NCBI GenBank assembly: GCA_965112735.1
Contig: OZ218954.1
Coordinates: 1,550,001 to 1,614,000, forward strand
Direction: 5' to 3'
Origin: Phaeosaccion multiseriatum
Lineage: Eukaryota > Protista > Ochrophyta, other classes
Length of the DNA: 64,000 bases
Shown: in pieces, positions 1,823-54,432 of the stretch
How positions within the stretch are numbered: the first letter of the stretch is position 1
Layout of the letters: every line of letters begins with the position of its first letter
Made by a program: the position numbers and the translations under genes
Notes under the pieces: model-generated
Database searches by the model: none
What the model was told of the DNA's origin: nothing
Seen by the model: the letters and a program-made list of their open reading frames with translations, nothing else

Positions 1823-3914
1823 CTAATGCGCCTCATTGCCCTTGAAGGCGGACTGTACGACCCTCTGCGCGTCGTCTGCGCCCATGGGTTGAGAGACCTT
1901 CTGAATGATGATAAGGAGTACCTCCATTTCCTTGGGATAGAAGTCACTGGCCTTACTTGCACCGCCCTCCGACTCGGCAGCAGCTTCAGCAGATTGAACC
2001 ATTTCAGTCTCCCCCCCGCCGGTACATATCTGTCGAAAGGCAGAAGACAAGCACGCCCGAAACTTGGTGAGAATGGCAGTTCCTGACGCAGCCCTCTTCC
2101 TCGTGCGCTCGACAACATCTGCACCACATAGTACCTTGTTCTGGTCAACGAGGCACCGGCCGAAGAACCTGTCCACCTCCGAAGTCAACTCAAACATCTG
2201 CCTCGACGCAAACATGAGCCCTCCCGCGTGCGCTCTCTAACCCCTTCGTAGGGCAGATCCTCTGACGTGGCTTCGTCCTCAGTCACTTCGTGCGAGTTAC
2301 AAAAGAGGCAGAGGTGGGCCATGGGCCCCTCGCCCCCCCCCTCGGCAAACACAGCGTTTGCAGAATGTACCCCGATACGTAACAAATTGCCTGGCGCTGG
2401 CTCTCGGTCCTCACGTCGAGACGGGCATCCTCCAGGACCTGAACCCTTCCTGCACTCGAACCTCTCGGACCCAAGTAAGCCACTCGCTTGCCACTGCGTG
2501 CCCCAGCACCCACACAATGATTCGCAAGTCACCCGCTGGGTTCATGCCAAAAATGCGGCCCAACATTCGTCCTTTCTCGGCTCCATCTCCTCCTCCCCAA
2601 CCGCATCGTCGTAGCCAGCCATGAAGCATTTCCACACGCCTTCGCTGTCCATGGCTTTCTGGACAGCACAATCTCTCGCTCAGTCGCGCTGGAGCTCAAA
2701 TTTCGCTACTGCCGCTAATGCTTCTGCTTTCACTCCGATATCACAAATGCAAACCGTATACGCGCTTGTCAGCGACTCAACAAGCTCATACGCGGGACCA
2801 TGGAACGCCTTCGACTTGAATAGCTCCACGACGAAGGCTCCCTCGACAGCTGTAAAGGAGCTCAACAAAGGGCCTGTGGGCTCCTGTCGCCCGTAGGCAC
2901 GTACAGCCAAAGCATTATCCACAATCTGGGGTGTGTGCTTCTTGATCCGCGCTGCCACCTTCGCCTTCTGCACCTTCATCTGCTCCCTGCACTCCTCCCC
3001 CCTCCGCCTCTTGTCGTCTGCCTGACGCTTTGCCTCTCCTTCGGCCTCAATGCTGGTGACGTGTGCGAGTAGGGTACGCTCATCAATCTCGCGAAGGGAC
3101 GCGTCCTCCCCAGCGCGCAGCACAACGGTCCTTCTCTGTTGCTCCGTCAGCTTCTGTTCTCCAGCGACCTCAACCATAATGGCAGCGATACTTGCCCGGG
3201 CAGCTGCAGCACTGGCCATGGTTTGCTCCGCCTTGGGGCGCAGCACAAGATGAACGATGGCGTCGATGTTCTTCGTCAAGAAACCGCAGTCTGCTGCCAC
3301 TTGCTGTTTAGCGGCAGAAGAGTCCCCGACATGCCTTAAGTGAGCCCTCACTTCGTTCGCAACACCGTCAAGGGGGGTCTCACCCTCCCCTTCCAAGGTG
3401 AGGAGGGCAGCGGTGTCCCTCATATAGACTAGGAGGGCCCCATCTGCAGACGCCCTGCTCTTCCGTGCGAAATCCACTATGGCCTTCTTCACATTTCCGG
3501 TGTCCCTCACCTCCACTGGGCACGCCTGCCGACACTGAGCTGCCGCTTTCTCCTCTTTCGGGTCCTTTATTTCCACAACCTCGCATCCTTCGGTACACTC
3601 GATGCTGCTACGAATCTGCTTGTTCAAGTTCTTTCAAGTCCTTTCAACTCCACATTCCTATACCTCCGGCTCGACATGAGAAAGGCTTTGAGTGCTCCCA
3701 CCACTTCCTCCCTGGAGCCGACGACATTCCTCTCTTCCAAGCGGATCGAGGCGCAGGCCTCGTCGATCTCCTGTCCGAGATGCGCGTCACTCAGTGGGCC
3801 CTTGTCTCCCTCCGCAGAGGCATGATCCTCATCCTCGAGATGCTTGAAGTACTGGTACATCATGGAATGGCTCCTGAGGGTCGATACTGCCAGCCAGAGG
3901 CGCCATCGAGCCAC
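1823..3914 (-). pseudogene. Degraded long ORF, probably transposon-associated
   Basis: Collinear minus-strand ORF pieces (3624-3914, 2680-3627, 2283-2513, 2185-2532, 1823-2215) broken by stops and frameshifts. The motif QAICYVSGYIL...FELTSEVDRFF resembles YIAGY-type C-terminal regions of P/THAP9-like proteins. Confidence 0.35.
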
Positions 3915-4194
3915 ACACTTGGAGACTCCTCTCCCTCACGCCCAGAGATATGCTCCTACTGTAATGGCTAAATCACGATCAGTGGGTCGCCAGCACCCCT
4001 ACCTTCACCACAGCACCAGGATAAGACCCCTTTCTAGCCTTTTCAACCACTTATGCTTTAAACCCTGTCTCCTACCGTGCGGCCTAGGCTACGAAAGAGG
4101 AGCTTCCTGCACGAGGAATTTGACGGATACGCACCCAAAATTAATCCGACGGTTGCGTCTGTCGCGCCTTTCCCCATACACATTAGCGCCCCTT

Positions 4195-5905
4195 GTCGCT
4201 ATCCAACATGAAGCCACTTGTGCTCGTGGTGGTGCTAAGTGCCTTACTCCTCACGCTACTAGTAGTGGTCTTCGGGGAATGGGGCCTATCGTTGCAGACG
4301 GGCTGCGGAGCAGGAGGTATAGAAGGCATGTCAATGGGAGAAGCCGCCGGGAGCGCAACCTCGGGCAAGCTCTTTACGATGGCCAAAGTCCGGCGTTGGG
4401 CAGGGAGGCGGCTGTTCAGCGACGATGACCACTCGTCCTTAGCCGCATCCAGGCCCAGCCCTCCCCCGACTCTGCCCGGGGCCCGCTTGTGTGAAAACTG
4501 GGCGGTGATCACGAGCATCAACCCCCCCACCACCCTGATGAGGCAGCTCGTACAAGAGCCAGACTGGTGCCTCGTGGTAGTGGCGGATCGAAAGAGCCCC
4601 TCACTCGACGAGTGGGACCTGGAGCAGAGCTCTGACACCGTCTACCTGACGCCTGATATGCAAGAGCAGCTGCCCTATACCCTCAAGGACAAGACGCCAT
4701 GGAACCACTTTGGCCGCAAGAACCTGGGCTACCTCTTTGCCATTCATCATGGCGCCAAGGTGAGAGCGAGTCTGTCGATTGTCTTTCGTGTCCTTTTTGT
4801 GTGCCGCTCACTTACTTGTTTAAGAACTCCCCATGATTCTCCGCGTCATCCCCTCTCTCTCCATCTCGTTTCACATGTAACTTTCAATTCTGTCGACCTC
4901 CCCAAAGGGACAATTCATGAGCGACGATTCACTTCACTCCATTTTCCCATTCGTCTGCGATCGGACCTGTCTCTTCCCCCCATCCTGCTCACTCTGGCTC
5001 AGGTCATTTATGATACGGACGATGACAACGACTTGCAACCAAAAGGCCAGCGAGTTGCCGAGCTCCCTGTAGCACAAAGCAGCCTGATTCTGAGCGCTCG
5101 CTCTCCTTCCATACGGTCCGGCGTTTTCAACCCCTACCCATTCTTCGGGGCCCCCCTCGCGTGGCCGAGGGGCTTCCCCCTGGATCTCATCAAGGCGGAG
5201 GTGGCGTCCATGGTTCATGACGGAAACGCTGTTGCCTCCTCCGCTGCCGTGGGGGTGGTGCAGAGCTTGGCCGACCACGACCCCGATGTGGACGGTATGT
5301 ACCGGCTCTCTCCCCTACCGCTCCCCTTCTACTTCTCCAAAGGCAAGGATTCGCTCGCGGATGAAGTTCTCGCGCTACCTCGGGGCGTCATGGCGCCATT
5401 CAACGCACAGGCCACCACTTTCTTCCCGGCGTGCTTTTGGGGGCTACTTCTGCCGGTGACGGTACACGGGAGAGTGGCAGATATCTGGCGGAGCTACTTT
5501 ACGCAGCGACTCATGCAGGACATTGGACAGCACCTGGCCTTTGGGGGCAGCAGAGTCGTTCAAAACAGAAACGCGCACTCATACCTTGCAGACTTCCAAT
5601 CTGAGAACCCGCTGTACATGCGGAGTGGGGCTCTGGTGGACCACCTGCAGGAATGGGAGGGACCTCCTACCGCCGAGGGAGGCATGCCCATGCGCATGGA
5701 GGCATTAGTCATTGACATGTACGAGCACGACATTCTGCAGGAGGGCGACGTGATCAGCATGCAGGCTTGGATCACAGATCTGTACGCCCTTGGCTACAGC
5801 TTCCCTCCGACGACATAGAAGACAGGTGTCGGCGGCTAGTCCAATCAAGGCCGTGCTATCCTCAGACGAAAGAAAGGTGCGACTGAGGTGCTCGGCTTCG
5901 CTTCT
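4195..5905 (+). repeat. Segmental duplication block A (matches ~57920-59630)
   Basis: Near-identical sequence from ~12 bp upstream of the STELLO ATG to the (CCT)n tract. Confidence 0.9.
4208..5818 (+). CDS. STELLO-like (DUF288/GT75-related) glycosyltransferase, copy 1; intron 4760-5002
   Basis: N-terminal TM (MKPLVLVVVLSALLL). Motifs WAVITSINPPT, VVADRKSP, PWNHFGRKNLGYLFAI, IYDTDDDN, WPRGFPL, PFNAQAT, VHGRVADIWRSY. GTGAGA...CAG intron at the same position in copy 2. Confidence 0.9.
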   Translation: MKPLVLVVVLSALLLTLLVVVFGEWGLSLQTGCGAGGIEGMSMGEAAGSATSGKLFTMAKVRRWAGRRLFSDDDHSSLAASRPSPPPTLPGARLCENWAVITSINPPTTLMRQLVQEPDWCLVVVADRKSPSLDEWDLEQSSDTVYLTPDMQEQLPYTLKDKTPWNHFGRKNLGYLFAIHHGAKVRASLSIVFRVLFVCRSLTCLRTPHDSPRHPLSLHLVSHVTFNSVDLPKGTIHERRFTSLHFPIRLRSDLSLPPILLTLAQVIYDTDDDNDLQPKGQRVAELPVAQSSLILSARSPSIRSGVFNPYPFFGAPLAWPRGFPLDLIKAEVASMVHDGNAVASSAAVGVVQSLADHDPDVDGMYRLSPLPLPFYFSKGKDSLADEVLALPRGVMAPFNAQATTFFPACFWGLLLPVTVHGRVADIWRSYFTQRLMQDIGQHLAFGGSRVVQNRNAHSYLADFQSENPLYMRSGALVDHLQEWEGPPTAEGGMPMRMEALVIDMYEHDILQEGDVISMQAWITDLYALGYSFPPTT

Positions 5906-18700: not shown

Positions 18701-19537
18701 CTGCGCCGAGCGCGAGATGACGGGCAGGGCCATGCACACAGACAAGGAGGGCATCCTCATCCTCAGGTGTGGCGAGGTGGGTTGCATCAGAGGGTGGAAG
18801 GGTGGGCGGTTGGGTGTCAGGATAAGAGGGTAGGTGCGTGCGTTGGTGGGTGCGTGCGTGGAGAGGCGGGTGGATGGGTGTCAGGACAAGAGGGTGGGTG
18901 CGTGCATGGGTGAATGGGTGGTTTGGTGGGTGAATGGGTGCGTGGGAGGGCGGATGGGTGGGTGTCTGGACAAGAGGGTGCCTGCGTGGGTGGGTTTGTG
19001 CGTGGATGGGAGGGTGGGTGCTTGTCAGGACAAATAGGTCGGTGCGTGCGTGCGTGTGTGGATGTTTTGTCTGCCCCCAAGTATACTCCGTCTGCAGTCT
19101 TATTCACGGATAGGAGGGACGGATTTTGAGTTGCATGACCCACGCGTCCTAAGGGAAGGGGGCGGGGGTGACACCAAGGGAGCTGGACGAGACACAGTGT
19201 CGCAGCAAGAGCCGCCTCACAGCCCATATGAAGAGGTTTCTTGTCTCGGTAGAAACCAGATCGGCCGGCTTTGAGGGGGGGGTTGTGGGGGCGTGCTATC
19301 CGCTATCGGCCGGCGACAGATAGCGGGCCCCGATAGCGCGCTATCAAGAATGTAGGCCGGTCTGGAGCCGAAGGGGTCGACCACCCACACGGTGGATTTG
19401 GGGGTACGGATACGAGGGATTTCCCTAAAAAAAGATTCTATTATTGACATACGCGAAAAATTGTTGCCACGACGGGCTCCCACGGCTTTGTTCACTCTGC
19501 TGCCCCTGACACAGCTGGACACAACCTAGTGAAAAGT

Positions 19538-21139
19538 ATGGCGAAAGCAGTGAAATGGGCGCTGTCCCTTCTGTTTGGCATGATCATGGTTGGGGTGGTG
19601 CTACAGAGCATGATTAGAAACCATTTTGGGGGAGAAAGCCACTTACCACATACCATGCCAGATGTACCAGATGCAAAGGGCGGATCGAAGCCAGCGAAAG
19701 CGCCCACATTCGATCCGCCCATTCACGTGCTGTGGCCGGGTAGTCACGAGCGGGAGGCCCTTGTCTCGCTCGGAGCGTGCCTCTCAAGCATCAAAGGGGA
19801 GAATGGCGCCGCCCAAGCCGGGTGGACAACTGGGGAGTACTGCCCAGAAACACGAAATCTCGACTACTATATACAGCAATACCCAGAGTATTATGCATGG
19901 GCTAAGGAGCATGTCCAGGAGAAGTGGGTAATGGGATCGGAGGAGCCTGATGACGACTTTATGAAATGTGAGGCACATGAAGTTCCGGAGGCAATAGTCG
20001 GCGGCGTTCTGGTCAGGGCAAAACACCCAAGAGCACGAGCAGTAGCATCAGCAGCAGCGACGATGGAGGAGGGCAAGGCGACCATCAGCGAGCTCTATGT
20101 GATCGATGACGAGGTATCTCGAATGACGGTGCAGAAGAACATCTACAACGTGTTTGTCACGCATGCCAGTAAATACATCTGGTGCCCTCTACGGTTGGCT
20201 TTGCAAGCGGCGGCGAGGGGAAAGAGGGTGACCCTCGCTCGGAAGACAAAGAAAGCACCTGCAGTTTTGTTTTGGAAGGACCTATTACAAGACGTCTCCG
20301 ACGCGCCATTTTCCCCCGGAGGCACGTACAGTCGCATCTTTACCGCCAAGATTGGCGGAGCAGCGGACCAGATTGCACACTCTTCGCAAGCCCGGCCGAA
20401 CACACAGCCGGACGTGCGGGGTGTCATGAAGACAGCAGATGCTGTCGTGAACAAGATCCTGCCCTCCAAGGGAGGAGATGCAGAGAAGGGTTGTGGGGAG
20501 AAGGGGGGTGTCCTGCTGGTGCAGCGCGCGGCGTGGTTTCGAAGGCAGCTTGGGGGGGCAGAGACAGGCACGCTCACAGAAGTAGTGGATGCCTTGCTCG
20601 CTCAAGACTTGTGTGTGGAGGTGGCAGACCTCTCCAGGGCCACCCCTCTGCAACAGATAACCAGCGCTCGGCGCGCGCACGTTTTCCTGTCTGTATATGG
20701 GGCGCAGTTGACCAACTTGGTTTGGATGAAGGCTGGCTCGACTGTGGTCGAGATCAAGCAGAATTTCGGCTTTTGTTGTAAAGAGGTGCCCAGAGGCGCG
20801 TATTTGGAGGATGGACGCTTGACAGACCCTGCTGCCTGCCTGGGTAAGTGTTGTGACCGCTGCGACGGATACTCCAACGCTGACTTTCACAACTTGGCCA
20901 GAAGGTTTGGACACCGACACGTGCAGCACACACCCGTGTATTCGACTCCCCCCCTTTCAAGAAATCCAGTCAATCGAGAAGTCACGCTGGTGAACGCGAC
21001 CCACCTGGCCGAGGTCGTCAAGGAAGCGTACACACATACAAACGCCGTGTACAACGTTTCTTCGTTCCCGAACGTTCGACCTGGGGCCCAGCGGCCTGGG
21101 GCCCAGCAGCGCGATGGGAAACCAGCGCGTACTCACTAG
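19538..21139 (+). CDS. Glycosyltransferase family 61-like type II membrane protein, intronless
   Basis: TM WALSLLFGMIMVGVVL. Motifs VLLVQRAAWFRRQL, EVVDAL, TPLQQITSARRAHVFLSVYGAQLTNLVWMKAGSTVVEI. Confidence 0.85.
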   Translation: MAKAVKWALSLLFGMIMVGVVLQSMIRNHFGGESHLPHTMPDVPDAKGGSKPAKAPTFDPPIHVLWPGSHEREALVSLGACLSSIKGENGAAQAGWTTGEYCPETRNLDYYIQQYPEYYAWAKEHVQEKWVMGSEEPDDDFMKCEAHEVPEAIVGGVLVRAKHPRARAVASAAATMEEGKATISELYVIDDEVSRMTVQKNIYNVFVTHASKYIWCPLRLALQAAARGKRVTLARKTKKAPAVLFWKDLLQDVSDAPFSPGGTYSRIFTAKIGGAADQIAHSSQARPNTQPDVRGVMKTADAVVNKILPSKGGDAEKGCGEKGGVLLVQRAAWFRRQLGGAETGTLTEVVDALLAQDLCVEVADLSRATPLQQITSARRAHVFLSVYGAQLTNLVWMKAGSTVVEIKQNFGFCCKEVPRGAYLEDGRLTDPAACLGKCCDRCDGYSNADFHNLARRFGHRHVQHTPVYSTPPLSRNPVNREVTLVNATHLAEVVKEAYTHTNAVYNVSSFPNVRPGAQRPGAQQRDGKPARTH

Positions 21140-33327: not shown

Positions 33328-34389
33328 ATGCCGATGGCTCGGGTTGGGCGCAAGAGAGGCAGGTACCAAGGAGCGGGACGGGTGGCGCTTGTCTTGGTCC
33401 TTCCCCTGCTGGCACTCCGCAGAAAGCACGGCAGTCCTGCTGGTGGTGCAGCGGCAGCGACTACACCTACGCCGAGTGTACTGGGGGTGTTGCCAGCTCT
33501 GCTGCTGCTGCTGAAGGCGCCTGCCACGGCTGAGTATGCAGGAGAGGTCGCCAGTGCCAACATCACCATCAACGAGGAGCAGGTACGTTGACTGTAGTGC
33601 ATTGCGAGGGAGTGCGGCTGCCACACATCTCCAACTCTTCCTAACATGTGAGCAGCCCAGGTGTCCCAGACTCTATCACAATGTCAATCCTCGTGCACGT
33701 GCACTGCTTCAGGTGTCGCTATCGGCGAGGCGGGGGGATGATCTCACACTCTTGGCCCAGGAATTTTGCAGAGAGCACAGCGTCGCCAACCCACAGCACT
33801 GCGTCAATAGCATCAGGTGCGTGCGTATGCGTTTGAACAACAATGTGGTGACAACAAGAGAGAGAGAGAGAGAAACAGAGGAGGAGAAGGAAACCTCTGC
33901 CCGCCTTCCCCCTCTTCCCTTCCTGCCCCACTTAAGGTGGGAGCTCTCGTCTCAGCTGTACTGCGCACCGGAGGCAGCAGCTATCCAAGGGCAAGAAGCA
34001 GCTTCCGAAGATCAGGGGCGAAGCCGTAGTGGAGCGCCGCCTTCCCCACTCCGCTTCCGCTTCGTAAGGCACTCCATCTACGAAGGCACTGATGAGTTCG
34101 ACCTGCTCAGGTATGAGTCAATGAATGGGGCGGGCCGCACAGAGGGCTCAGACATGAGCACGAATTGGTTGAGGGCGGCGGGGGGCGGGATAAATGCTCT
34201 CTTTCCTTCGGCGTCTGCCCGCCTTCCTCTCTGTGCTGCCTGCATGTCTGCCTGTCTGCGCGCTACCAACCTGCCCACACTGCAGAGAGGGAAATCCTCA
34301 CCCCCGCCCCACCCCACTCGACGTCCCCCCACCTCCTCCTCCTCCTGCTCCTCCTCCTGGTCCTCCTGCTCCTCCTCCTCCTCCTCCTC

Positions 34390-34425
<36 letters not shown>

Positions 34426-35483
34426 CTCCTCCTCCTCCTCCTCCTCCTCCTCCTCCTCCTCCTCCTCCTCCTCCGCCTCTTCCTCCTCCTCCTCCTCCTC
34501 CTCCTGCTCCTCCTCCTCCTCCTCCTCCTCCTGCTCCTCCTTCTCCTCCTTCTCGCCCTCGTCCTCTGCGTACCCTTGCAGAGACATTTTCTGGAGCTCG
34601 GGTGCGGTGGAGTGCCCTCCCTCGGACATGAGCGGCGGCGCGGACTCTGTGGACGCTCTGTGGCTGCTGGGAGACGTACAGCAGCGCTGGGAAGTGCCCT
34701 ACTTCGGCGGCCTTGGGGAGGGGCAGAGAGTGAATCGCCTGCCCAGGGAGGCTGACCTGGGCAGGAAGGACTCCATGACGAGGAGCCTTCTCGAGCTCTC
34801 CAAGGTAGGGGCACACGTCGTCATGATCGAGGAGGAGGGAGTAGGTAGAGGAAGGGCTCAGGTGATTCGTCATGTGGCTCTGTGACGTACATGCTGAGCC
34901 AGTTATTGCTTTTTTTGGTGAGCAGCGGAGATGGGGTGGAGGCAGCGGCTCAATTGTGTACCCCTAGCCTTCACTCCACTCCACTCCTTTCCATGGTTTT
35001 GCTTTGCGTTTCCTTTCCCTTGCGCTCGAACAAGACTTTCGGTGATCGTGCGGTGTCGTTTCTCCCTCGAACCTGGTGGGTGGACTCGCTCTCCGCGGCT
35101 GGCACCACTACAGCAGTTGGTAGTACGGCAGGAAGAGTAGTCGGGGAGAAAGAGGGGGGACTCAGCGGTGGCAATAGAGATGGTAGTAGTGATGGCAGCA
35201 TCAGCAGCAGCAACAGTCCCGGGATGAAGGAGGGTTTCCGAGTCGATGAGCAAGGCTGGGCTCTGCGTATGCCGCATGTCCTCAAGGCGCCCGACAAGGA
35301 CCTCGGCAAGGGGGTCTTCTTGGTGGACGGCCTCGACCTAAGCAACGGCCTCGACCTAAGCAATGGCAATGGCAGCGACGACGTGGGCCGCTGCGGGGAG
35401 GACTGCTTCCTGCAGCGATATGTTTCGCACCCGCTCCTGCTACCCGTCGTGCCGGAGCAACCGGGTGCGTGTATTTTTTTGGG

Positions 35484-35514
<31 letters not shown>

Positions 35515-37669
35515 TGAGGGTATGTACCTGGGCTGCGTGCATGCAGTTGCCTGTGTGGCGCGCACAGTTTGAAGAAGTACTCCTGCTGTTCTTTCGTCTT
35601 CCTCTCTCTCTCTCTCCCTTTCGGCGCCCTTCCTTCCCTTTCTCACCCTACCTCGGTGCTCCACTTCCTCTTTCCTCCCTCTCTCACGCCCAACCCCACG
35701 CACGCACCCACAGGCGAGGAGCGTAAGTTCTCCTTCGGCGTGTACGTGACTGTGAGCCTCGACCCGCTTGCCGTGTATGCGCACGAGGAAATGTTGGTGC
35801 TCTTCTGCACGAGGCCGTACGACGCCAGAAATGCCTCGGACGTACTGGTGAGTGTGTGCGTGCGTGCGTGCGTGCGTCTGAGAAGACAGAGCTTTGGTGT
35901 TGCTGTACGATCCCCACCTTTCTGTAGCTCATTCGTAGTCCTTCCTTCTTTTGTCGTCAGCCCCCCCCCCTCCCACCTTAACCTTGCCCCTCGTTACCCT
36001 CACCCTGTGGCCCATTGGACCCCCACTCCACCCCACTCCCCTTTACTCTGTTTCCTCTGCTTTGTAAAGGGTCACTTGACGAACGGACTCACTCAGCGCA
36101 AACTCAACCCCCTCGAGTATGACGAGAGGAAGCACGTGTGGGACTCCGCCAAGCTCAAGAGTGCACTGAAGGACAAAGGTGAGGCATGTGGGACTTTCAA
36201 GGGAGGCGAGTGGGAGGGGAGATAGGGTGAGGACTATGGCCGTAGTTGAGGTCATGGCATCTTGTCCTTCCGTCCTGCCTTCCTTTTTCGATCCTCTCTC
36301 CCGCTCAACTCCTCTAAATCTCATCCTCTTGCATAATACGTTTTCACGCAGTTGCTCACTCACTCACCGACTCACTCACTCATTCACTCACTCACCTACC
36401 AATTCCTGAATCCCCTTCTACCATTCGTGTCCGCCGTCATGACCTTCTCCCTCCTGCGCAACCTTAGGCATCCCCTGGGGGCCCATCCAGCGCCAGGTGG
36501 ATGAAGTCATCTCCCTTACGCTATTGAGCGGCCTCGAGAGAAGCAGAGACGTCCTCGCTCAAGCCGCTGCGTACCGACGGGTGCAGCAGCAGCAGGAGCA
36601 GCAGCAGCAGCGCGCGCACGCACGCACGCCTCAGGCAGCAAGCGAGGAGGAGGGGGAAGCGGAGGCCAGGAAAGGGGCGACCCAAGCGGTTTCCGAGCAG
36701 GCATTCACGTTCTGGCGCCTTGACTTCCTCCTGGACGACAGCCTGAAGGTGTGGCTGCTTGAGGTGGAGGTGGTGCCTTCCACAGGGGTGATTGGGGCGG
36801 TAGATGGAGTCATCAAGCGGAGGGTCCTCACTGACTTACTCTCCATGCAAGGCTGGGGCGGGCAGAAGAAGCAGAGGCAGGAACAGGAAGAGGAGGGGCA
36901 TCAGGAAGGAGAGCAAGGGAACGATGACCTGGAGTCACAAGTGGAAGAGACACTGTGGGCCAAGCTGCCCGCCGTTGTAGCAGACGGAGGAGAGGCAGCC
37001 AAGGGAGCGGTCCGCACGGTGGTTGCCTTCGAGGAGAGGCACCGCAGGAGGGGAGACTGGAGACTCATCATGCCTGCCCCCGGGGGAGAAGAGGGCGAGA
37101 TTGGGAGGGGTAAGTTGGGGACAGAAGAAGAGAGAGAGGGAGATAGGGCAGCATGAGAGGAGGGGCCTGCTTGCGCCCTCATCATCCCATGCAAGCGCCA
37201 AGTGTGAGAATGCTGTTTTCACTGTTTTCACTAAGGCTTTTTGTCTCTCTCGTGTGTGTTTGTTTGTATGTGTGTGTGTGTGCGCGTGCATGCATCAGGT
37301 TTTCTCGCGCGTCAGGCCTTGCCCAAGGACACGCTGTTGCAGCGTTGGGTGTCCGCGACCCAATCACACGTAGACAACAACCCTACGGCTGATGATGCTG
37401 CTACCCGCGGGGCTCATGAGGGGGGGGAAGGTCGTGCTGAATTAGAGGGGGGACGCACTGCCCCTGGCGTGGGGAGGGGCTTTACCCCTGGCAAAGACGA
37501 TGATGACCCCATACCGCTGACGCTGGAGAGGGCAGAGCGAGAGTGTCTCCGCTGCATCGACGGGGGCAACGGCAAGGGATACTGCATGCGGCTTGATTCG
37601 ACTTCTTTTCAGGAAGGTGGTGACCACCATGAGCAGCAGCAGCAAGAGCAGCAGCAGCAGCAGCAGCAG

Positions 37670-37718
<49 letters not shown>

Positions 37719-38671
37719 GGGAGAGCATGGGCAAAGACACGGTGGGTGGCGTAGGATCGCCTCACCACGAGCCCCGAGTGTCCGGGAGGTGTCAGAGCGT
37801 GCGAACGGGCTGTGCGTACACCCGGGAGGGGAGCTTACTCGACGCAGTACTGGCCACGACCCAGGGGGGCTGCGCTCTCACAAGGTATGGACCTGGTCCT
37901 TACCCCTCTATGCATCTATTCTTTTTGCTGCAGCTGCAGGTTGGAGTGATGAGAAAGATATCATCCGAAAGAGCTCACTTGACGCTCCACTCCAGCGGAG
38001 GCTTTGTTTGATTGACTGCTTTGTACTTGAGTCTGTTGCGTCCGAAGTTTTGAAGTTTTGTTCTGACTTCTGCGACACACCATCTCGTTGTTCCGTGGAG
38101 GTGTTCCTCTGCCGTAATCAGTCTCTCTCTCTCTCTCTCCCGTCCACTGCCTTCAATCTCTCTCACCCATCCACTGCCTTCCCCATCACCAGCGGTGCTG
38201 GAATGGTGCACTTCCTCTCCGGGCTCAACGTGCATCGCGTTTCCTCGCCGGGGATGGACCAAGCCAGACAGGAGTGGTGCAGGTGCGTGCGTGCGCGTTG
38301 TGTTCGTCGTTGCGGCATTCCTCACGTCTGATTCAATTGTGATTTGCGCGTCTCTGTGTATGCAGCTATCTTCTCGCCAGTGTGCATGCAAGCACCTTCA
38401 GCAGCAGCAGCAGCAGCAGTGGAGACAGCCTCTCCGGGATTCCCTCTCCGTACGCTGAGCTCTCAAAGGGTTCAGAGGCCTACCGAACGGTCAAAGGCCT
38501 CCAGGATGTCTGCGACGGTTTCATCGAAGACGACAGCAGCACCTTTACCCGTCTTCGGACAGGCTTTGGGGCGGGAGAGGGAAGCGGAGTCGAGACTGTG
38601 AGCCTCCTGGAGCAACAGCCTCATGGAGACGAGGGTCTGATACAGCAGGAGCAGCAGCAGCAGCAGCAGCA

Positions 38672-38708
<37 letters not shown>

Positions 38709-39278
38709 GATGAGGAGGAGAGGGAGGAGGGTAGATCACGAGGAGTAGAGGACAAGGATGACGACGTGAGTGCCGTTTTCTTGCGGCACATCGACGAGAA
38801 CAGGCCTCTGCTCCTGCTCAACCTCACCACCTCTGCAGACGACATTGCAGGTTCGAGCGAGCTACTGTGTGGGGTGTTGGGCTGTCTGCCTGCCTTGCCG
38901 CCTTGGCACAAACGACCACTCTACCCCTGGGAGACCCTCTGACTCCCACCCACCCCCTCCCTCTCTCCCTCCCTCGCTCACTCCTGGTGGACCTGATGCA
39001 AATGGCGACAATCGCGGCATGTGTGTATATCCATTTGATGTTATCTGCCAGCAGAGCAGTGGAGCGCGTCAGCTCTAAAGGAGGAGTTTGCACAACGCGA
39101 TGTGACCGTGCTAATCTATGACGAGGCCAAGGATAGGGCACAGGTACGTCGTGTACGTTGGGGGTCTATGGGCACGCGGTGGGGCGAGCTCTCTTCCGAG
39201 CCGGGATGAGTCTTCCGAGTCGGGATGAGGCAGGGCGGGCATGCAACACACGGCACACACACACGAAACACGCATGCA

Positions 39279-39317
<39 letters not shown>

Positions 39318-40425
39318 ACACAGACAGACACACACGGCAGAGCGCCATGTGCAATGTGCTCTCCTCTCTCTGTCCCGCCTTATCGGACATACTGCCCCTC
39401 CCTCTCCTTGTAGAGAGCTCCTTGTACAGTGCACAGCTGCCTCCACCCCAAGGCCTTGCCCCTCCTCCTCCTCACCACGCCCGACCACTCTTCGTCCTCC
39501 ATCCATCTTTGCCATGTTGTTCATCCAAAACCTGGCAAAAAGCCGCTGGCGACGACTGTGCTGGCCTTCGAGGACTTCCTCTCGCACTCCGCCCACAAGG
39601 AGAGCCTGGTCCTCGACCACGTGCACGAGCAGGCGGAGGAGGAGGAGGAGGGTTTCCGAAGCGATGAGGAGGAGACGCAGAAACTGAACCTGTACCTCCT
39701 CCTCACCACCCGACCCATGAGGTGTGGAAAGAAACTCGGCCCATAGGCTGCCATCCTCCACCTCTCCGTACTCGTGTGCTCCCCCTTCTCATCTCCCTCC
39801 TCTCCTTTGTCCCTGTCTCTTCGTGAAGTTCTGTGCCAAGGAGATTCCGTCCTATTCCTTCCATTGCACATAGCCTGTACTTCCTCCTCTTGTCGCCTAT
39901 GTAACTAACCTCTGTTTCACTCTCCTCTCCTCTCCTCTTCCCACATCTCCAGTGATGGCAACAGCATGAACCCCAACGGCCTCGACAGCCCGCTCGCGGC
40001 AGCCCTCTTCCCGAGGCTCGAACGCCAGGCCACAGCTCGGTGAGAAGGGCAGAACACTCTACCCTTGTGCTCTTTTTTCTTCCGGAATACTCTACCCTCT
40101 TGCTTGTGTCTTCGTTCAAGGCCTAAGAGGCGCTTTCGCGTATGCTCTTCCCTTCCTCTCAGTCACTTCTCCTCCCTCTCTCTCCCCTTCCCCGGTCTCT
40201 CACTCTCTTCTCTCTCCCCCTCGCCGTTTCCCTCTCTCTCCCTCTCTGTCTCACCTCTCTCTCTCCCCCCTCTCTCTCTCTTTCTACCGCTTCTCCCTCT
40301 TCTCCCTCTTCAATGTGCACACACCAAAAGCCTTCATGCTTTACTCGCAGAGGTATCGACTCTGTCGGCAGCAGCGGAAAGAAGCACCTCGTCCCTGCTG
40401 TCCCTTCAAATTGGATGGTAAGTTC

Positions 40426-40485
<60 letters not shown>

Positions 40486-41129
40486 CTCTCTCTATCGTGG
40501 CATATCACCGTCAACCTGTATCTCCTGTCACCCGAGCTCAAGAAGTCTCTTTGTAATAGAATGTCTTGTCCTGACACCCATGATTCAGTCAGTGTGTCAT
40601 CGTGCCCTCCCCTCCTCCCCTCCTTGGTGTCGGGACACTGGATTGTCTTGCCCTCCGCCTTTACAACCTGCGCGTATCCAGGACCTCGCTCCGGCTCTCG
40701 TCGGCGTACCGCTATCCCACGCATATTGATTGCTTCGAGAACGTGCTTCTGCAACTGCATGGAGTGAAGACTGTCACGCTCTACCCGCCGGTACGCACAC
40801 AGTAGGAGGGAGAGGGAAGGGGGATGGGGGGAGAACAGGACACGAGAGGAAGGAGGGGGAAAGAGACGAAGGAGGGGCGGTGGTGGTGCTGCTCATGTAG
40901 AGAAAACATGAAGGATCTAGGAGTAGAGTGATTCCATACCTCTTCGATATGTCAGTTGCATCCCTTCACCCCCATCCCCCACCCACCCGCGTCGGTTGTC
41001 GTTTTTCGGTGTCACAGTCTCGTGTGGGCGACTTCTCCCCTGACCCGCTCCACAAGCACTGGCCAGCGGCGGGCGAGGATAAGCGCAGCAGAGCCTTGCC
41101 ACACGCCATTACCGTCACCCTTTACCCAG

Positions 41130-41206
<77 letters not shown>

Positions 41207-41521
41207 TGCGTGTGTGTGTACGAGCGTTGACGGGGTGTTGTCTCTCGACGTCTGCCCTCCTTTTGGGCCTCCCACTCTCCCCCTCCGAATGACGACCACG
41301 CAGGGTCGGCGCTCTACATTCCACTCATGTGGCTGCACTCAGTGGAGTCTGCGAGCGAGTGGTCTGTCTCCGCCAATGTCTACTTCTTCCACGGAGCAGA
41401 CAATGAAATGAGGAGGAGAAGGAGGACGAGGACCAGGGCACAGGCCACGACCGAAGAGGGCACAAAGGAGGGTACAAGCAGCCCCCACTTCCCAGCCGAA
41501 GCACCAGAGGGTGACAGTAGT

Positions 41522-41557
<36 letters not shown>

Positions 41558-41647
41558 GACTTGGCGGAGTGGGGCATCTATGTGTCGGCCCGGAAACCCG
41601 ACGCGTGGAGATGGCACGAGCTGCAGCACGGGCAGCTCCTCTGCTGA
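33328..41647 (+). CDS. Multi-exon protein: N-terminal hydrophobic segment + tubulin-tyrosine-ligase-like ATP-grasp domain + JmjC (cupin-like) 2OG-Fe oxygenase domain
   Basis: TTL motifs RVNRLP..LGRKD, FLPRTW, VLKAPDKDLGKGVFLV, LQRYVSHPLL, RKFSFGVYV, HLTN, DFLLDDSLKVWLLEV. JmjC motifs ENRPLLL, WSASALKEEF, PTHIDCFENVLLQLHGVKTVTLYPP, LYPGSALYIPLMWLHSVES. Introns 37110-37298, 37885-38192, 38283-38365/38380 and 38851-39051 keep the two halves in one frame. Start inferred. Confidence 0.75.
34330..34560. repeat. (CCT)n/(TAC)n compound microsatellite, intronic
   Basis: Directly visible. Confidence 0.95.
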
Positions 41648-42034
41648 CACACCAAGTCAAAGAGAACTTGCTGAGATGCACAGAAAGGAGAGAAATGACT
41701 CGAAGCGACGCGCTGTTATTCATAAGATCATAGACACTGTTCTCTCAGATCCACCGGATAGGCTCCGAACGCTAGCACCCTCCCAACGATAGACTCCTCG
41801 GCGTGTCTCCGATACAGGGGAGGATGGTTTCCCCGGGGCCTACATGCTTGTCGCAGTGGGCGAGGTACGGGAATCAGTTGGGCTGGGAATCAGTTGGATG
41901 ACGTACGTGGCGGGCAGAATAGGGCCCCCTGGTGCCCAGTGCAGCGGTATGGCGGAGGGCGTACATCCGCCCGAGAGCGGGGCATGCAGAGGCGCAAAAC
42001 TGTGTCACAGTGCTGTGCGTAGAACGCACAATAA

Positions 42035-42820: not shown

Positions 42821-45525
42821 CTATCCTCCTCCTCCTCCTCCTCCTCCTCCTCCTCCTCCTCCTCCTCCTCCTCCTCCTTTTGCTATTGCCTCCTCCCCTG
42901 CCTCTACTTCTTGTGTTGCTGGTGGTGCTGTTGCTGCCCCTCCTGCCCATGGCGCTGTATCTTCGCTATTCAACACATTGTCTTGCTTCGCCTTTTGTTG
43001 CATCTCCAGTGCCTCCACCCCCCTCCCCTCCTCCTCCTCCTCCTCCTCCTCCTCCTCCTCCTCCTCCTCCTCTTCCTCTTCTTCTTCTACCCCCCTTCCC
43101 TCCTCCCCCTGCTCCTGATCCTTCTCCCTCTCCTCTTCCTCCTCCTCCTCCTCCTCCTCCTCCTCCTCCTCCTCCTCCTCCTCCTCCCCCTGCTTATAAT
43201 CTTCTTCGAGCTGCTGTCCCTCACTCGGCAAAGCCCTCCCTTCAATGCCGCCGCCCCCTTCTCCCGACTGCAGTCCTTCCCACACCTCGTTCCCCTGGAG
43301 AGGAGAGTCATAATGATGACACTGACCCTCTCCAGTATCCTCCTCGCTACCACGCTCACTACGGGAGTCAAGCTGAGAGTCACCGCGAGCTCCGCCATCG
43401 GACGCAACACCAGCAGCAGGAGTAACATCAGCAGCAGCGGCAGCAGCAGCAGCATCAGCATCCCCGACAGCACCAAGCGCATTAGCATCAACAGGAGCAG
43501 CAGCAGCAGCAGCAGCCCCAATGCCTCCTGCTCCATCTTCGTGGCGCTCCTCAAAGGCAGCGGCGAAGAGGTCTGGCTCCCCCTCCACCTCCTCCATCAC
43601 CACCCCCATACCAGCAGCGTTGAGGGCATCAATGCCCTCAAAGGCCCCTCCATCCATGGCGCCATCCATTGCCATCGCCACCCCCATCGCGGCGTCTCTG
43701 ACTCGCGGGGCCGGCGCTCCGTACTCATCTTCCATCCTCACTCCTCCACACACTTGCCTCAGCAAGGCCGGAGTCCGGATAACCTTTCGCACCCGCCAGC
43801 CGCGAATGGCAGCGACCTCGGGATAGATAAACTGGAGAAAGAAGTAGAGGTGTCCCACTAGGATACCGACACAGTCCGTCATCAAAGGGTTCCTCAGCAG
43901 GAGGGAGAAGCACAGCAGAACCCACGGAAGGTACGGCGCAGTGAAGGGAAAGAGTCCGAGGAAAGACATGCGGACATGCTCATTCCTCCTGCGCGATTTG
44001 TGGTCGTTTAGTGTGGGGGGGTAATATAAGCACATGCAGCCCGCCGAGAGGGCACGAGGAGCCGTCAGAGTCAAAAGGTTGGGGCGTGGGGTTGGGGCCG
44101 GGTTTAAGACCAGACTCAGGGGTCAGAGTGGGGGTAAGAGGAAGAGCAGATTCAAGGGGCAGGGGCAGGGTCAGGGGCAGAGGCAGGAGCGAGATAAAAC
44201 ATTAGTGCCCGTTCTTGTGCGCACCTCCCCCAGACGTAGACCATCATAAAGGTCAGGCTAGAAGCCAGGAACTCAAGCTTCATCCAGGGGTTGGCCAGCA
44301 CCATGAGCGAGGCGCCGAAGAGCAGCATATTCAAGAAATCTGATGGTTTAAGCAGAGAGAACAAGCAGAGCATTATAGAGCGCAAGAGAAGGAAGAAGAA
44401 AGAAGAATGACAAGTGAGAACCAGAACGAGAATGGGGGCTAGAGAGAGAGAGACAGCGAGAGCGCAGCAGGAGGTGGGCAGGGACAGGCCAATTGAAGGC
44501 GGCAGCAGCTGTACTTTCGCAGCGGATAGGCGAGGCGGGGTCTGTGACTCACTACTCTCCTCACATGAACCTCTATCTCCCTCTCTCCCTGTCTGTCTCC
44601 TCTCTCTCTCCCCACACACGCACACACATACTCACCTGCCGTCCTTCCTCTGAACTCTCCCTCCTCCAGCAGCCGGCTGTACCTCACCAAGAAGTACATG
44701 TGAAACTGCCAAAAGGCAATGCAACAACAAGAGTGAGGAGATGAGAAGTACAGGGGGGAGTGGCGAGGGAGGAGACAAGGCCACGACAGAGGGACAAGAG
44801 GGAGGGGCCAATCCCCAGGAGACAGGGGAGGATGTAATGGGAAAAGACGAAAAGACACACACTCAACTCAAGCTTGTTCTGGAAGTGCTTTCGCTTTGTT
44901 TGGGGTGTGGGGGGGACAGAAGACTTGGACTTACCAAAAAGTCGAGTGAGAAGGGCCCAAAGTAGAGAAAATTGGTGACGAGCCTCCATAACTGCCCCTC
45001 CTGTAGTATCTGCGTCTGATTGAAGTAGATGGCGAAAGGAGTGATGACTTCCAGGGTCACGAGGGCCTGAAGAGCGGAGAGAGGGAAACCCGTGAGGACT
45101 AGAGGGAGCGCGTGATGGGAAGCGGGACGGGAGGGAAAGGGGGGCTGCTAATGGGATGCTCATACTACTGCGTGTATACTCCCCTGGGGAGCTAAGAGCG
45201 AGTCGAAACCCGGGCAAGGGAGCATTTACGTACCGTTGTCAAGAAAGCCCCTGTGAGGTAGAGCCTGCTGATAATCGGAATCTGGGGGAAGGTGGTGGAA
45301 GGGAATCACAGGCGGAGCAGCAGCACATGGGTAATGGTCACACATGCGACTGGCAAAGACACGAGCGAAAGCAGCAGCACTGGAGCGAGAAGGCCCGCGG
45401 AAGCTCCACGTTTACAGAGCCTTCCCTTCCCTCCCCTCTCCCTCCTCCTCTGCGATTTCCTGACCGTTCCTTACACCACACACCTCATAATACCAAGTCA
45501 GCGGGTCCGCTGCCGCGTTGTTCAT
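42821..45525 (-). CDS. DER1: Derlin (Der1-like ERAD membrane protein) with a long low-complexity C-terminal tail
   Basis: Exons MNNAAADPLTWYYE/IPIISRLYLTGAFLTT/...QLWRLVTNFLYFGPFSLDFL/FHMYFLVRYSRLLEEGEFRGRTA/DFLNMLLFG...TFMMVYVWGR/RNEHVRMSFLGLFPFTAPYLPWVL...GILVGHLYFFL. The 3' end is uncertain. Confidence 0.92.
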
Positions 45526-50293: not shown

Positions 50294-51658
50294 CTATCCA
50301 ACATTAAAGTACTTCTTGTCGAATCCGGGCTCCTCGAACAGAGAGGCGTACTCCACGAGCAGCCTGTAGGAGTAGCAAGCAGCGTCTTCTTCCCGCAGGC
50401 GCCTCAAGGCGAGGTCTCTGCTGCGTTGGCACACGTTCCGCGCCTTGCCTTCGTTCAGCACTGCCCACCTCACCACCTGCTCCAGGTCAGACAGCGAGTA
50501 CTGCACGGGTAGGTAGTGCACCCAGGGCAGGACCCGGTCCGAATACCATTGCTGGTATCGGGACACCTTAAACACGACCGAGGAGGAGCCCAGTAGAGCA
50601 GAAAAACGCTGAGAAAAACCGTTCCCGTCGAGGTCCAGCAAGTACTTGTGCTCGAAGAGCCATCTGTAGTTTCGATACCCCTTGAACGAGTACAGAGACT
50701 TGACTCGAGCGCACTCACCCGGAGGATCCGGGTGGCACTGCACAAGAGAGGAGAAGCCAATGTCCACACCCACATCCAAGCTCTCTGCCAAGCCGCCTCC
50801 GAGGTCCAGCTGAGTCTCGTTGCCCCACTTCCTCACTGCTCTGAACCGCAGCCACTCCCGATGGGCGTCTTTATCGTGTGACCCTCCCAGAAAGGGCCCT
50901 GTGGTGGAGCCCCTCCACACTACGCGCGACGCCTTTCTCTCCCACTGAGTGTCCACGGCTGCCACTCGTGTCGCCTCAGACAAATTGCCCAGAAAGTACG
51001 GCAGGCGGATCTCCGTGGGTGGCTTGCCCTTCTCAATGGACCACCCAAACACGGGGACTTCGTGAGCCCACTTTGCATCCAAGATCGGTTTATCCGCCCT
51101 GGAAAAGAGGAACTCCAATGGCTGGTCCGGCGAGGTGAGGGCAGGTCCAACTTCCTCTAAAATTGGACCCCAGAAGGCCACCAGCTTTTTGCGTAGACCT
51201 GCCGGGAAGCCGTCCGCAAAGTCCAGCGCTCCATTTCCCCTTGTGCTGGCCAAGAAGAATGGACTGCCCAGCTTAGATGCCGAGAACACGCCTCTCTTCA
51301 GCGGCGGTCCTCAACGGAATCTGGCCAGATCCGTCTCGATGTTGGCATAGTCATACAGTTCGCAGTTTCTGCTCTCGGCAAAGCTGAGCCAGGAGAAGAG
51401 CAGATGCGGGGCGTCTCTTCCATAGCGACGGGTGTAGTCGGAACTAAACCGCTCCCACGAAGTGAACGAATCCCCACTTCTTTCTTCCTTCTTCTGATGA
51501 TGTACTAACAACGAATCGGCCTCGCCACCACTTCTTTCTTCCTTCTTCTTCTCCTCCTGTAAGTAATATATACTATATATAAAGTGAATGGCCACCAGCA
51601 ATAAAATCGAGAGGAGGGTGACAAGCCGCCAGGGCTTACTTGTCAGTGCTGGCCCCAT
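50294..51658 (-). pseudogene. Glycosyltransferase family 90 (CAP10/POGLUT-like), copy A, with a premature stop
   Basis: Motifs WERKASRVVWRGSTTG, HKYLLDLDGNGFSQRF, LPWVHYLPV. In-frame TGA at 51311-51313 where copy B has TCA (Ser). Confidence 0.85.
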
Positions 51659-53148: not shown

Positions 53149-54432
53149 CTATCCGACATTGAAGTACTTCTTGTCGAATCCGGGCTCCTCGAACAGAGAG
53201 GCGTACTCCACGAGCAGCCTGTAGGAGTAGCAGGCAGCGTCTTCTTCCCGCAGGCGCCTCAAGGCGAGGTCTCTACTGCATTGGCCCACGTTCCGCGCCT
53301 TGCCTTCGTTCAGCACTGCCCACCTCACCACCTGCTCCAGGTCAGACAGCGAGTACTGCACGGGTAGGTAGTGCACCCAGGGCAGGATCCGGTCCGAATA
53401 CCATTGCTGGTATCGGGAAACCTTAAACACGACGGAGGAGGAGCCCAGTAGAGCAGAAAAACGCTGAGAAAAACCGTTCCCGTCGAGGTCCAGCAAGTAC
53501 TTGTTCTTGAAGAGCCATCTGTAGTCTCGATACTTCTTGAACGAGTACAGCGACTTGATTCGATCGCATTCACCCGGAGGATGCGGGTGGCACTGCACAA
53601 GAGAGGAGAAGCCAATGTCCACACCCACATCCAAGCTCTCTGCCAAGCCGCCTCCGAGGTCCAGCTGAGTCTCGTTGCCCCACTTCCTCACTGCTCTGAA
53701 CCGCAGCCACTCCCGATGGGCGTCTTTATCGTGTCCCCCTCCCAGAAAGGGCCCTGTGGTGGAGCCCCTCCACACTACGCGCGACGCCTTTCTCTCCCAT
53801 CGAGTGTCCAGGGCCGCCACTCGTGTCGCCTCAGACAAATCGCTCGGAAGGTACGGCAGGCGGATCTCCGTGGGTGGCTTGCCCTTCTCAATGGACCACC
53901 CAAACACGGGGACTTCGTGAGCCCGCTTTGCCTCCAAGCTCGGTTTATCCGCCCTGGAAAAGAGGAACTCCAATGGCTGGTCCGGCGAGGTGAGGGCAGG
54001 TCCAACTTCCTCTAAAATTGGACCCCAGAAGGCCACCAGTTTTTCGCGTAGATTTGCCGGGAAGCCGTCCGCAAAGTCCAGCGCTCCATTTCCCCTTGTG
54101 CTGGCCAAGAAAAATGGATCGCCCAGCTTGGACGCCGAGCACACGCCTCTCTTCAACGGCGGTCCTGAACGGAATCTGGCCAGATCCGTCTCGATGTTGG
54201 CATAGTCATAGAGTTCGCAGTTTCTGCTCTCGGCAAAGCTGAGCCAGGAGAAGAGCAGATGCGGGGCGTCTCTTCCATAGCGACGGGTGTAGTCGGAACT
54301 AAACAACTCCCATGAAGTGAACGAATCCCCCCTTCTTCCTTCCTTCTTCTGACGATGTAAGTGAATGGCCAACAGTAAAATCGAGACGAAGAGCAGCAGC
54401 CAGCGCTTACTTGCCAGTGCTGCTATCATCAT
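53149..54432 (-). CDS. Glycosyltransferase family 90 (CAP10/POGLUT-like), copy B, intact and intronless
   Basis: 427-aa ORF with TM WLLLFVSILLLAI and the same GT90 motifs as copy A. Confidence 0.9.
   Translation of the reverse strand: MMIAALASKRWLLLFVSILLLAIHLHRQKKEGRRGDSFTSWELFSSDYTRRYGRDAPHLLFSWLSFAESRNCELYDYANIETDLARFRSGPPLKRGVCSASKLGDPFFLASTRGNGALDFADGFPANLREKLVAFWGPILEEVGPALTSPDQPLEFLFSRADKPSLEAKRAHEVPVFGWSIEKGKPPTEIRLPYLPSDLSEATRVAALDTRWERKASRVVWRGSTTGPFLGGGHDKDAHREWLRFRAVRKWGNETQLDLGGGLAESLDVGVDIGFSSLVQCHPHPPGECDRIKSLYSFKKYRDYRWLFKNKYLLDLDGNGFSQRFSALLGSSSVVFKVSRYQQWYSDRILPWVHYLPVQYSLSDLEQVVRWAVLNEGKARNVGQCSRDLALRRLREEDAACYSYRLLVEYASLFEEPGFDKKYFNVG

Follow-up and report, generated by a model that had tools for sequence, protein, structure and literature searches.

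The gene model and its relatives

The window analysed here, a stretch of 64,000 nt from Phaeosaccion multiseriatum (assembly GCA_965112735.1, contig OZ218954.1, positions 1,550,001-1,614,000 of the forward strand), is a eukaryotic region with a guanine-cytosine (GC) fraction of about 0.58, in which CAG, TG and TC microsatellites are common. From 33.3 to 41.6 kb its + strand displays many short open frames, which can be joined into a gene (33328-41647) of 16 exons and 15 introns with 4158 nt of coding sequence (1385 codons and a stop). The predicted protein contains a TTL-type ATP-grasp domain, a Cys-rich linker and a JmjC (Cupin_8) domain resembling the hydroxylase FIH. It is likely that this is one intact, single-copy fusion gene with its parts in that order, belonging to a small undescribed family from stramenopile-type marine algae.

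The model was built with homologues as guides, admitting solely GT...AG pairs that kept the frame and introduced no stops; phases and junction codons were checked singly, and searches were run with single exons or with natural relatives. All of the introns (15 of 15) are of the GT-AG type, with lengths of 120-549 nt and compatible phases, and each splice junction restores sequence that is continuous in the relatives. Examples are the N-terminal C-x13-C spacing, which is restored by the intron at 33817-33936 alone, and the junctions ...LLELSK/TFGDRAVSFLPRTW, ...KDK[G]IPWGPIQRQ and ...KDRAQ/PLATTVLAFEDF. Confident coding pieces show a GC content of about 0.65/0.40/0.75 at the three codon positions, a pattern that is absent from the introns and that is resembled by exon 9 (0.73/0.47/0.70). 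The stop and the splice sites are not assembly errors, since DNA contigs from four runs of one sample match 36400-41700 with zero differences, introns included. Neither the TTL half nor the JmjC half has a second copy in the same genome, where no other TTL locus was found adjoining a Cupin_8 locus.

The Ser/Tyr-rich stretch at 34111-34581 is intronic. An open reading frame (ORF) in intron 9 (37936-38118, + strand), which is Cys-rich and 61 codons long, was rejected as an exon: it has no phase-matched donor-acceptor pair with a credible intron length, no codon-position GC pattern and no profile match, and it may represent chance, a relic or an alternative exon. The joints seen in the contig alignment are not splices; they are located in GAG-rich low-complexity sequence. 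Such GAG/GGA-rich sequence, present at 39631-39652 and 41410-41432, recurs genome-wide and is a source of false joints and depth spikes.

Searching 1.84 billion representatives by phmmer, with the last TTL exon as query, returned 42 matches in all. The domain order TTL then Cupin_8/JmjC was found in five of the eight best, and the top group separates cleanly from ordinary TTLLs; word-index searches yielded more members with the same two domains. Database members are unnamed or labelled 'hypothetical', the only named one being P0074, the hypothetical protein CTAYLR_003432 of the pelagophyte Chrysophaeum taylorii. In P0074 the JmjC domain is followed by a transaldolase domain and the ...C end of the family is missing, which probably reflects two adjacent genes merged by annotation. 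Three members are single uninterrupted ORFs on separate metagenome contigs (L001, 3519 nt; L002, 3332-6232, 2901 nt; L003, 6001-9288, 3288 nt) and the fusion is for this reason not an artefact of gene prediction; a Top1 gene on the L002 contig points to a pelagophyte-like host. The TTL exons and the JmjC exons of the window are matched in order by the same relatives, with 64-75% identity in the HxD exon (E about 1e-13).

Read from the N-terminus, family members have a signal-like start, a brief Cys motif, the TTL/TTLL ATP-grasp domain, the Cys-rich linker, the FIH-like JmjC domain and, as their last residue, a Cys, and the window matches the family alignment A1 collinearly through its N-terminal motif, TTL part, Cys linker, JmjC part and terminal Cys. 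A sister group, composed of the P0005 cluster (P0060-P0069) and of P0004/P0059, comprises proteins of 580-740 residues with no JmjC domain that share the signal-like start, the N-terminal Cys motif and the altered KFSFGVY / WR.D / LLE.[ED] ligase site; proteins of the P0005 type have ...SSGY as their end, and the Tara gene catalogue contains one of them. The linker was modelled (P0002:462-815, 11 sequences) with a predicted local distance difference test (pLDDT) score of 67 and a predicted template modelling (pTM) score of 0.47, and a Foldseek comparison of this model with the PDB gave nothing below E 0.3. An ESM Atlas feature search with P0002 gave no usable match. The family is small in the collections searched, with members in stramenopile-type marine algae, and no paper combining TTL and JmjC in one protein was found in the literature. 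Within superfamilies that are already known, the family has a new domain architecture and its TTL part forms a clade of its own.

The centre of the gene model is the junction at 37110. In the first-pass annotation the TTL part was said to stop only apparently at 37156, with the donor at 37110 and three further introns keeping the frame open into the JmjC domain. The TGA does lie inside an intron bounded by GTAAGT and a CAG acceptor, and the frame does stay open, with three introns rather than four between the last TTL exon and 39052. This donor is the sole frame-consistent, stop-free exit from the last TTL exon. Two acceptors, 37235 and 37298, are possible, and the latter was chosen because the match to the FLA.KALP motif of the relatives begins at 37301, with the first full codon that follows this acceptor. 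When compared with the 12-member family profile A1 using hhalign, exon 8 aligns with columns 363-555 (E 1.9e-27), its tail reaching to a few residues before the donor, and exon 9 aligns from its first full codon with columns 577-694 (probability 92%, E 6.3e-7), with six of its six linker-module Cys in register. Pairwise comparisons of exon 9 with three family members gave E 2e-4 to 6e-4. The 15 read-through codons up to the TGA have no family counterpart, and an in-frame ATG is absent from the first JmjC exon. The nearest relatives are single ORFs encoding TTL then Cupin_8, and the window exons are collinear with them across 37109/37299, which upholds the proposal that both halves belong to one gene; judged by these alignments, the fusion is very probably real.

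Table 1. Features of the TTL-JmjC gene, of its surroundings in the window and of the gene neighbours on contigs L002 and L003. Residues of TTLL6 named here are the aligned counterparts.
Feature	Positions	Strand	Remarks
Exon 1	33328..33582	+	ATG 33328; earlier in-frame ATG 33304; donor cag/GTACGT at 33583
Exon 1, first hydrophobic stretch	33382-33417	+	VALVLVLPLLAL
Exon 1, second hydrophobic stretch	33478-33513	+	VLGVLPALLLLL
Exon 1, end	33559-33567	+	...ATA/EYAG, then NIT sequon at these positions
Exon 1/2 junction			restores ...INEEQ/VSLSARRGDD
Exon 2	33713..33816	+	tblastn to P0008, P0072, P0075
Exon 2, N-terminal Cys motif	33761-33802	+	EFCREHSVANPQHC
Exon 3	33937..34110	+	...WELSSQLYC, then FRFVRHSIYEGTDEFDLL, start of TTL N-domain; tblastn P0002 E 7e-5
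Exon 4	34582..34804	+	...GAVEC...LWLLG...VNRLPREADLGRKD; tblastn to P0075, P0008, P0072
Exon 4, ATP-phosphate Lys of RKD motif	34766-34768	+	TTLL6 K125
Exon 5	35035..35464	+	TFGDRAVSFLPRTW...; low-complexity insert
Exon 5, VLKAP Lys	35284-35286	+	TTLL6 K174
Exon 5, LQRYV hinge	35410-35424	+	
Exon 6	35714..35847	+	Pfam TTL E 1.3e-7; aligned to TTLL6
Exon 6, KFSFGVY	35725-35745	+	Lys from 35725, TTLL6 K215; Ser 35731-35733 replaces Asp; Gly 35737-35739 replaces Arg (TTLL6 R219)
Exon 6, EEMLVLF	35785-35805	+	Leu 35800-35802 replaces second Arg (TTLL6 R241)
Exon 7	36070..36178	+	GHLTNGLTQRKLNP...VWDSAKL
Exon 8	36468..37109	+	TTL C-terminal part; Pfam TTL E 4.6e-9; tail ...EERHRRRGDWRLIMPAP
Exon 8, FWRLDF		+	family-only Arg 36716-36718; Mg-Asp 36722-36724 (TTLL6 D346)
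Exon 8, WLLEVEVVPS	36752-36781	+	Glu 36761-36763 (TTLL6 E359); Glu 36767-36769 replaces Asn
Exon 8, VDGVIK		+	Lys 36815-36817 (TTLL6 K377)
Intron 8	37110..37298	+	189 nt, GTAAGT...CAG; holds TGA 37154-37156 and a (TG)n run
Exon 9	37299..37884	+	linker module: FLARQALPKDTLLQRW, CLRC 37544-37555, GYC, poly-Gln insert, GRCQSVRTGC 37784-37813, GGCAL
Exon 10	38366..38850	+	Ser and Gln runs; ends ...FLRHIDENRPLLLLNLT, start of Cupin_8 domain
Exon 11	39052..39143	+	EQWSASALKEEFAQRDVTVLIYDEAKDRAQ; tblastn P0001 E 1e-3
Exon 12	39543..39721	+	PLATTVLAFEDF...LYLLLTTRPM; directly after ...DRAQ as in relatives
Exon 13	39953..40039	+	...NSMNPNGLDSPLAAAL...; family NPN motif 39969-39977
Exon 14	40589..40790	+	...TSLRLSSAYRYPTHIDCFENVLLQLHGVKTVTLYPP; PTHIDCFEN 40716-40742; Cupin_8 23.2 bits
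Exon 14, cofactor ligands		+	Fe ligands His 40722-40724 and Asp 40728-40730; 2-oxoglutarate Lys 40767-40769
Exon 15	41018..41129	+	SRVGDFSPDPLHKHWP...ITVTLYPG
Exon 16	41304..41647	+	SALYIPLMWLHSVE, WSVSANVY, poly-Ser, ...WRWHELQHGQLLC; stop TGA 41645-41647
Exon 16, LMWLHSV	41324-41344	+	third Fe ligand His 41336-41338
Flanking ORF	19529-21139	+	GT61
Flanking ORF	42821-44074	-	Der1-like protein of endoplasmic-reticulum-associated degradation
Flanking ORF	50294-51289	-	GT90 (POGLUT/CAP10-type)
Flanking ORF	53149-54432	-	GT90 (POGLUT/CAP10-type)
L002, head-to-head partner of fusion gene	1886-3061	-	TPT/nucleotide-sugar-transporter-type gene
L003, head-to-head partner of fusion gene	4130-5428	-	Sulfotransfer_2 gene

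The two catalytic sites

The two exon-bearing ORFs of the TTL part score 31.5 and 36.4 bits with the Pfam TTL model (PF03133), above the cut-off of 20.1 bits, and the relatives score 101-124 bits. The nearest solved structures to the ATP-grasp part are those of TTLL6 (PDB 6VZQ, E 1.8e-21) and TTLL7 (4YLR, E 1.3e-19). The nucleotide and Mg ligands of TTLL6 (K125, K174, K215, D346 and E359) all have aligned, conserved counterparts in the window (Table 1). The family thereby has in common with TTLL6 and TTLL7 the phosphate- and adenine-binding lysines of the RKD and K-P motifs, the Q.Y hinge, the HLTN loop and the Mg-binding Asp and Glu. In TTLL6, K283 and K377 hold the γ-carboxylate of the donor glutamate (10.1101/2020.06.07.139295). 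The counterpart of K377 is invariant in the family and shared with TTLL6 and TTLL7; K283 aligns to a Glu beside an Arg, in a gapped region.

Other parts of the ligase site set the family apart from TTLL6 and TTLL7. The deviating motifs KFSFGVY and LLEVE, reported earlier for the window, are present and prove to be family-wide. In all of the members that cover the motif, KFDLR is changed to KFS.G and the Arg of GLARF to Leu or Val, and the Asn of LLEVN, which is the third metal ligand and is found in canonical matches, is replaced by Glu or Asp. The two lost Arg correspond to R219 and R241 of TTLL6, which bind the transferred γ-phosphate and either of which abolishes activity when mutated; R202 and R222 of TTL are likewise essential (10.1101/2020.06.07.139295). 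In the window their places are taken by Gly and Leu. The family has an additional, invariant Arg, that of F.hWR.DFLLD, which precedes the Mg-binding Asp by two residues; canonical TTLLs have Gly at this position. Family and canonical motifs separate cleanly.

Ligase activity is uncertain because both of the γ-phosphate-binding Arg have been lost family-wide, and the TTL-like domain may be a pseudo-ligase, which would fold and might bind nucleotide or acidic peptides but would make no bond, leaving hydroxylation by the JmjC domain as the sole chemistry. The substitution of both Arg in every member, the change of the KFDLR Asp to Ser and the altered third metal ligand all argue in this direction. 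On the other hand, the nucleotide lysines, the HLTNG loop, both Mg-binding residues (Asp and Glu) and the K377 Lys have stayed invariant or nearly so although overall identity is only about 35%, and the family-only Arg has been gained on the strand of the Mg-binding Asp, a pattern that looks like rewiring and not decay. From strand geometry, the side chain of this Arg should point the same way as that of the Asp, which makes a relocated phosphate-binding Arg plausible. A pseudo-ligase is nevertheless a serious contender, to which we assign a likelihood somewhat short of even.

The closest solved relative of the family's JmjC part is FIH (E 1.5e-7), with JMJD5 and TYW5 next. Single JmjC exons searched against the PDB gave E values of 0.4-1.2 only, the FIH match being obtained with the full domain of a relative. 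With Cupin_8, the 67-residue product of the HxD exon reaches an E value of 7e-5, its bit score lying below the 27.4-bit cut-off, and the relatives score 45-56 bits. The HxD...H iron ligands had been described as intact, and the alignment with FIH agrees: the His and Asp of PTHIDCFEN, the His of LMWLHSV and the 2-oxoglutarate Lys correspond to H199, D201, H279 and K214 of FIH and are invariant in the family, as are two further Asn identical to N205 and N294 of FIH. The natural reading of this site is that of an active 2-oxoglutarate oxygenase. FIH (HIF1AN) is an asparaginyl/aspartyl/histidinyl hydroxylase that, unlike the family, is cytosolic and stands alone; its identity to the family is low, and the comparison covered the iron and 2-oxoglutarate ligands and the two Asn.

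Cellular location and genomic neighbourhood

The hydrophobic N-terminus noted previously is found in the window as VALVLVLPLLAL. Using a hydropathy heuristic, an uncharged hydrophobic stretch of 11-24 residues was detected at or near the N-terminus of all nine N-terminally complete relatives (seven fusions and two TTL-only proteins). The n-region ahead of it is at most seven residues long in the fusions and P0004 and 24 residues long in P0005, a TTL-only protein. It is the second stretch of the window, VLGVLPALLLLL, followed by ...ATA/EY, that sits where the relatives carry their signal-like segment. After the hydrophobic stretch, still near the N-terminus, the majority consensus displays an FC...C...C motif. 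The proteins contain 19-25 Cys each, many of them at invariant positions, including seven in the linker and the last residue, which is consistent with disulfide formation. The secretory (luminal or surface) location that had been proposed is favoured by the signal-like N-termini of all complete members and by the invariant Cys, short of proof, and on these grounds we consider it quite probable that the protein is lumenal or extracellular.

If the hydrophobic N-terminus were instead a membrane anchor, the enzyme domains would be cytosolic and would modify tubulin or other cytosolic proteins, as ordinary TTLLs do. The TTL domain is indeed nearest to the tubulin polyglutamylases TTLL6 and TTLL7, and flagella are probably built by this organism, because its genome holds about 14 other TTL loci. 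However, the stretches are short and lie at the extreme N-terminus, with n-regions of 0-24 residues, the Cys content is high and much of it invariant, and the linker, which has no PDB match, takes the place of the cationic microtubule-binding domain of TTLL7. A cytosolic, anchored enzyme is accordingly improbable.

Two separate genes or transcripts, with a TTL gene ending at the TGA of intron 8 and a JmjC gene starting, for example, at an ATG near 37268, could be accommodated by the in-frame stop 45 nt beyond the donor, by the in-frame ATG upstream of exon 9 and by the fact that the runs matching the locus are all DNA, but they are very improbable given that both halves form one ORF in the relatives, that homology runs on from the exon 8 tail and resumes at the first full codon past the acceptor, that the read-through tail has a low GC content at third codon positions (GC3) and no family counterpart, and that a separate luminal JmjC protein would be devoid of the N-terminal signal of the family.

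Just ahead of exon 9, the (TG)n run of intron 8 (37237-37297) contains an ATG in frame and can be read as hydrophobic 'CVCVCV'; it could in principle mimic the start and signal peptide of a JmjC-only isoform.

The gene had also been placed among glycan genes, and GT61, Der1-like and two GT90 ORFs are indeed encoded in the window (Table 1). Secretory-pathway neighbours accompany the fusion gene in three genomes, those of the window, L002 and L003. On the last two, which are unrelated contigs, the fusion gene is paired head to head with its neighbour, an arrangement that may reflect shared regulation or a hydroxylate-then-sulfate logic.

Extracellular JmjC proteins of the FIH1 family, some of them fused to sulfotransferases, have been described in Monosiga and stramenopiles (Iyer et al. 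2010, PMC2938197). These proteins, which are predicted to be extracellular, share their JmjC clade and their eukaryotic group with the present family, but no TTL fusion was reported among them (PMC2938197); the secretory neighbours and the Sulfotransfer_2 pairing on L003 fit with these proteins. C7orf58, a protein predicted to be secreted, also contains a TTL-like ATP-grasp domain; by its description it differs from the family in being animal-specific and fused to a PC-esterase instead of a JmjC domain. In bacterial clusters, JmjC genes are paired with ATP-grasp peptide ligases (PMC2938197), linking the same two superfamilies in peptide modification, but as separate genes and with an ATP-grasp domain that is not of the TTL type. 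JMJD8 (PMC5684140), a JmjC protein that has a signal peptide and resides in the endoplasmic reticulum (ER), shows that a JmjC-only fold can occur in the secretory pathway; it is a single-domain animal protein and is absent from the sequence matches to the family.

Proposed function and implications

In the mechanism envisaged, the protein would enter the ER/Golgi lumen, a step that we regard as rather probable, and its JmjC domain would there hydroxylate side chains of secretory or cell-surface proteins, which is only slightly less so. Using the relocated Arg, the ATP-grasp domain could join a Glu-like amino acid to carboxylates on these substrates; alternatively, it could serve only to bind ATP or acidic peptides and to present substrates to the hydroxylase. 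Ligation and mere binding are about equally likely. The most complete form of the proposal is a bifunctional ER/Golgi writer, in which the relocated-Arg ligase would add Glu-like residues to secreted or surface proteins or glycans and the FIH-like oxygenase would hydroxylate the same substrates. It is put forward tentatively and is less likely than not. Of the two-step ligation and hydroxylation suggested in the first-pass annotation, the hydroxylation step fits the intact JmjC site and the ligation step is doubtful, given the family-wide loss of both γ-phosphate-binding Arg; successive action of both domains on a single residue is conjecture. A non-tubulin substrate, also suggested there, finds support as a plausible assumption.

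Several points weigh against the main reading of a secretory fusion protein encoded by the gene as modelled. The N-terminus of the window has two hydrophobic stretches and an uncertain start codon. The conserved Cys, one CxxC included, could be zinc ligands and not disulfide partners. With both essential Arg replaced, the ligase may be inactive, and we know of no ATP-grasp ligase with demonstrated activity in the secretory lumen. Within the gene model, exon 10 is barely conserved and gives a weak profile match, any AG in 38365-38419 could serve as its acceptor, and its boundary is the least certain of all; the donor GTTCGA at 38851 is weak. The run search for the locus returned matches in DNA runs alone, from one sample, and no transcript.

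Ligases of the TTL type are familiar as enzymes that write the tubulin code in the cytosol, where JmjC hydroxylases of the FIH type are also known to act. Here, the two are joined in a conserved and apparently secretory fusion, the ligase site of which has been rewired in a coordinated manner by the change of three canonical catalytic residues and the gain of one invariant Arg. The intron-free relatives P0008, P0043 and P0049 offer ready-made ORFs for expression. Should the ligase be inactive, the family would illustrate clearly how a ligase fold can be turned into a recognition module serving a hydroxylase. Should it be active, it would be a lumenal amino-acid ligase, a chemistry so far undemonstrated in that compartment, and a natural test of the way in which ATP-grasp enzymes hold the acyl-phosphate and, if the bifunctional reading is true, a modification of the tubulin-code type would have been exported to the algal cell surface.

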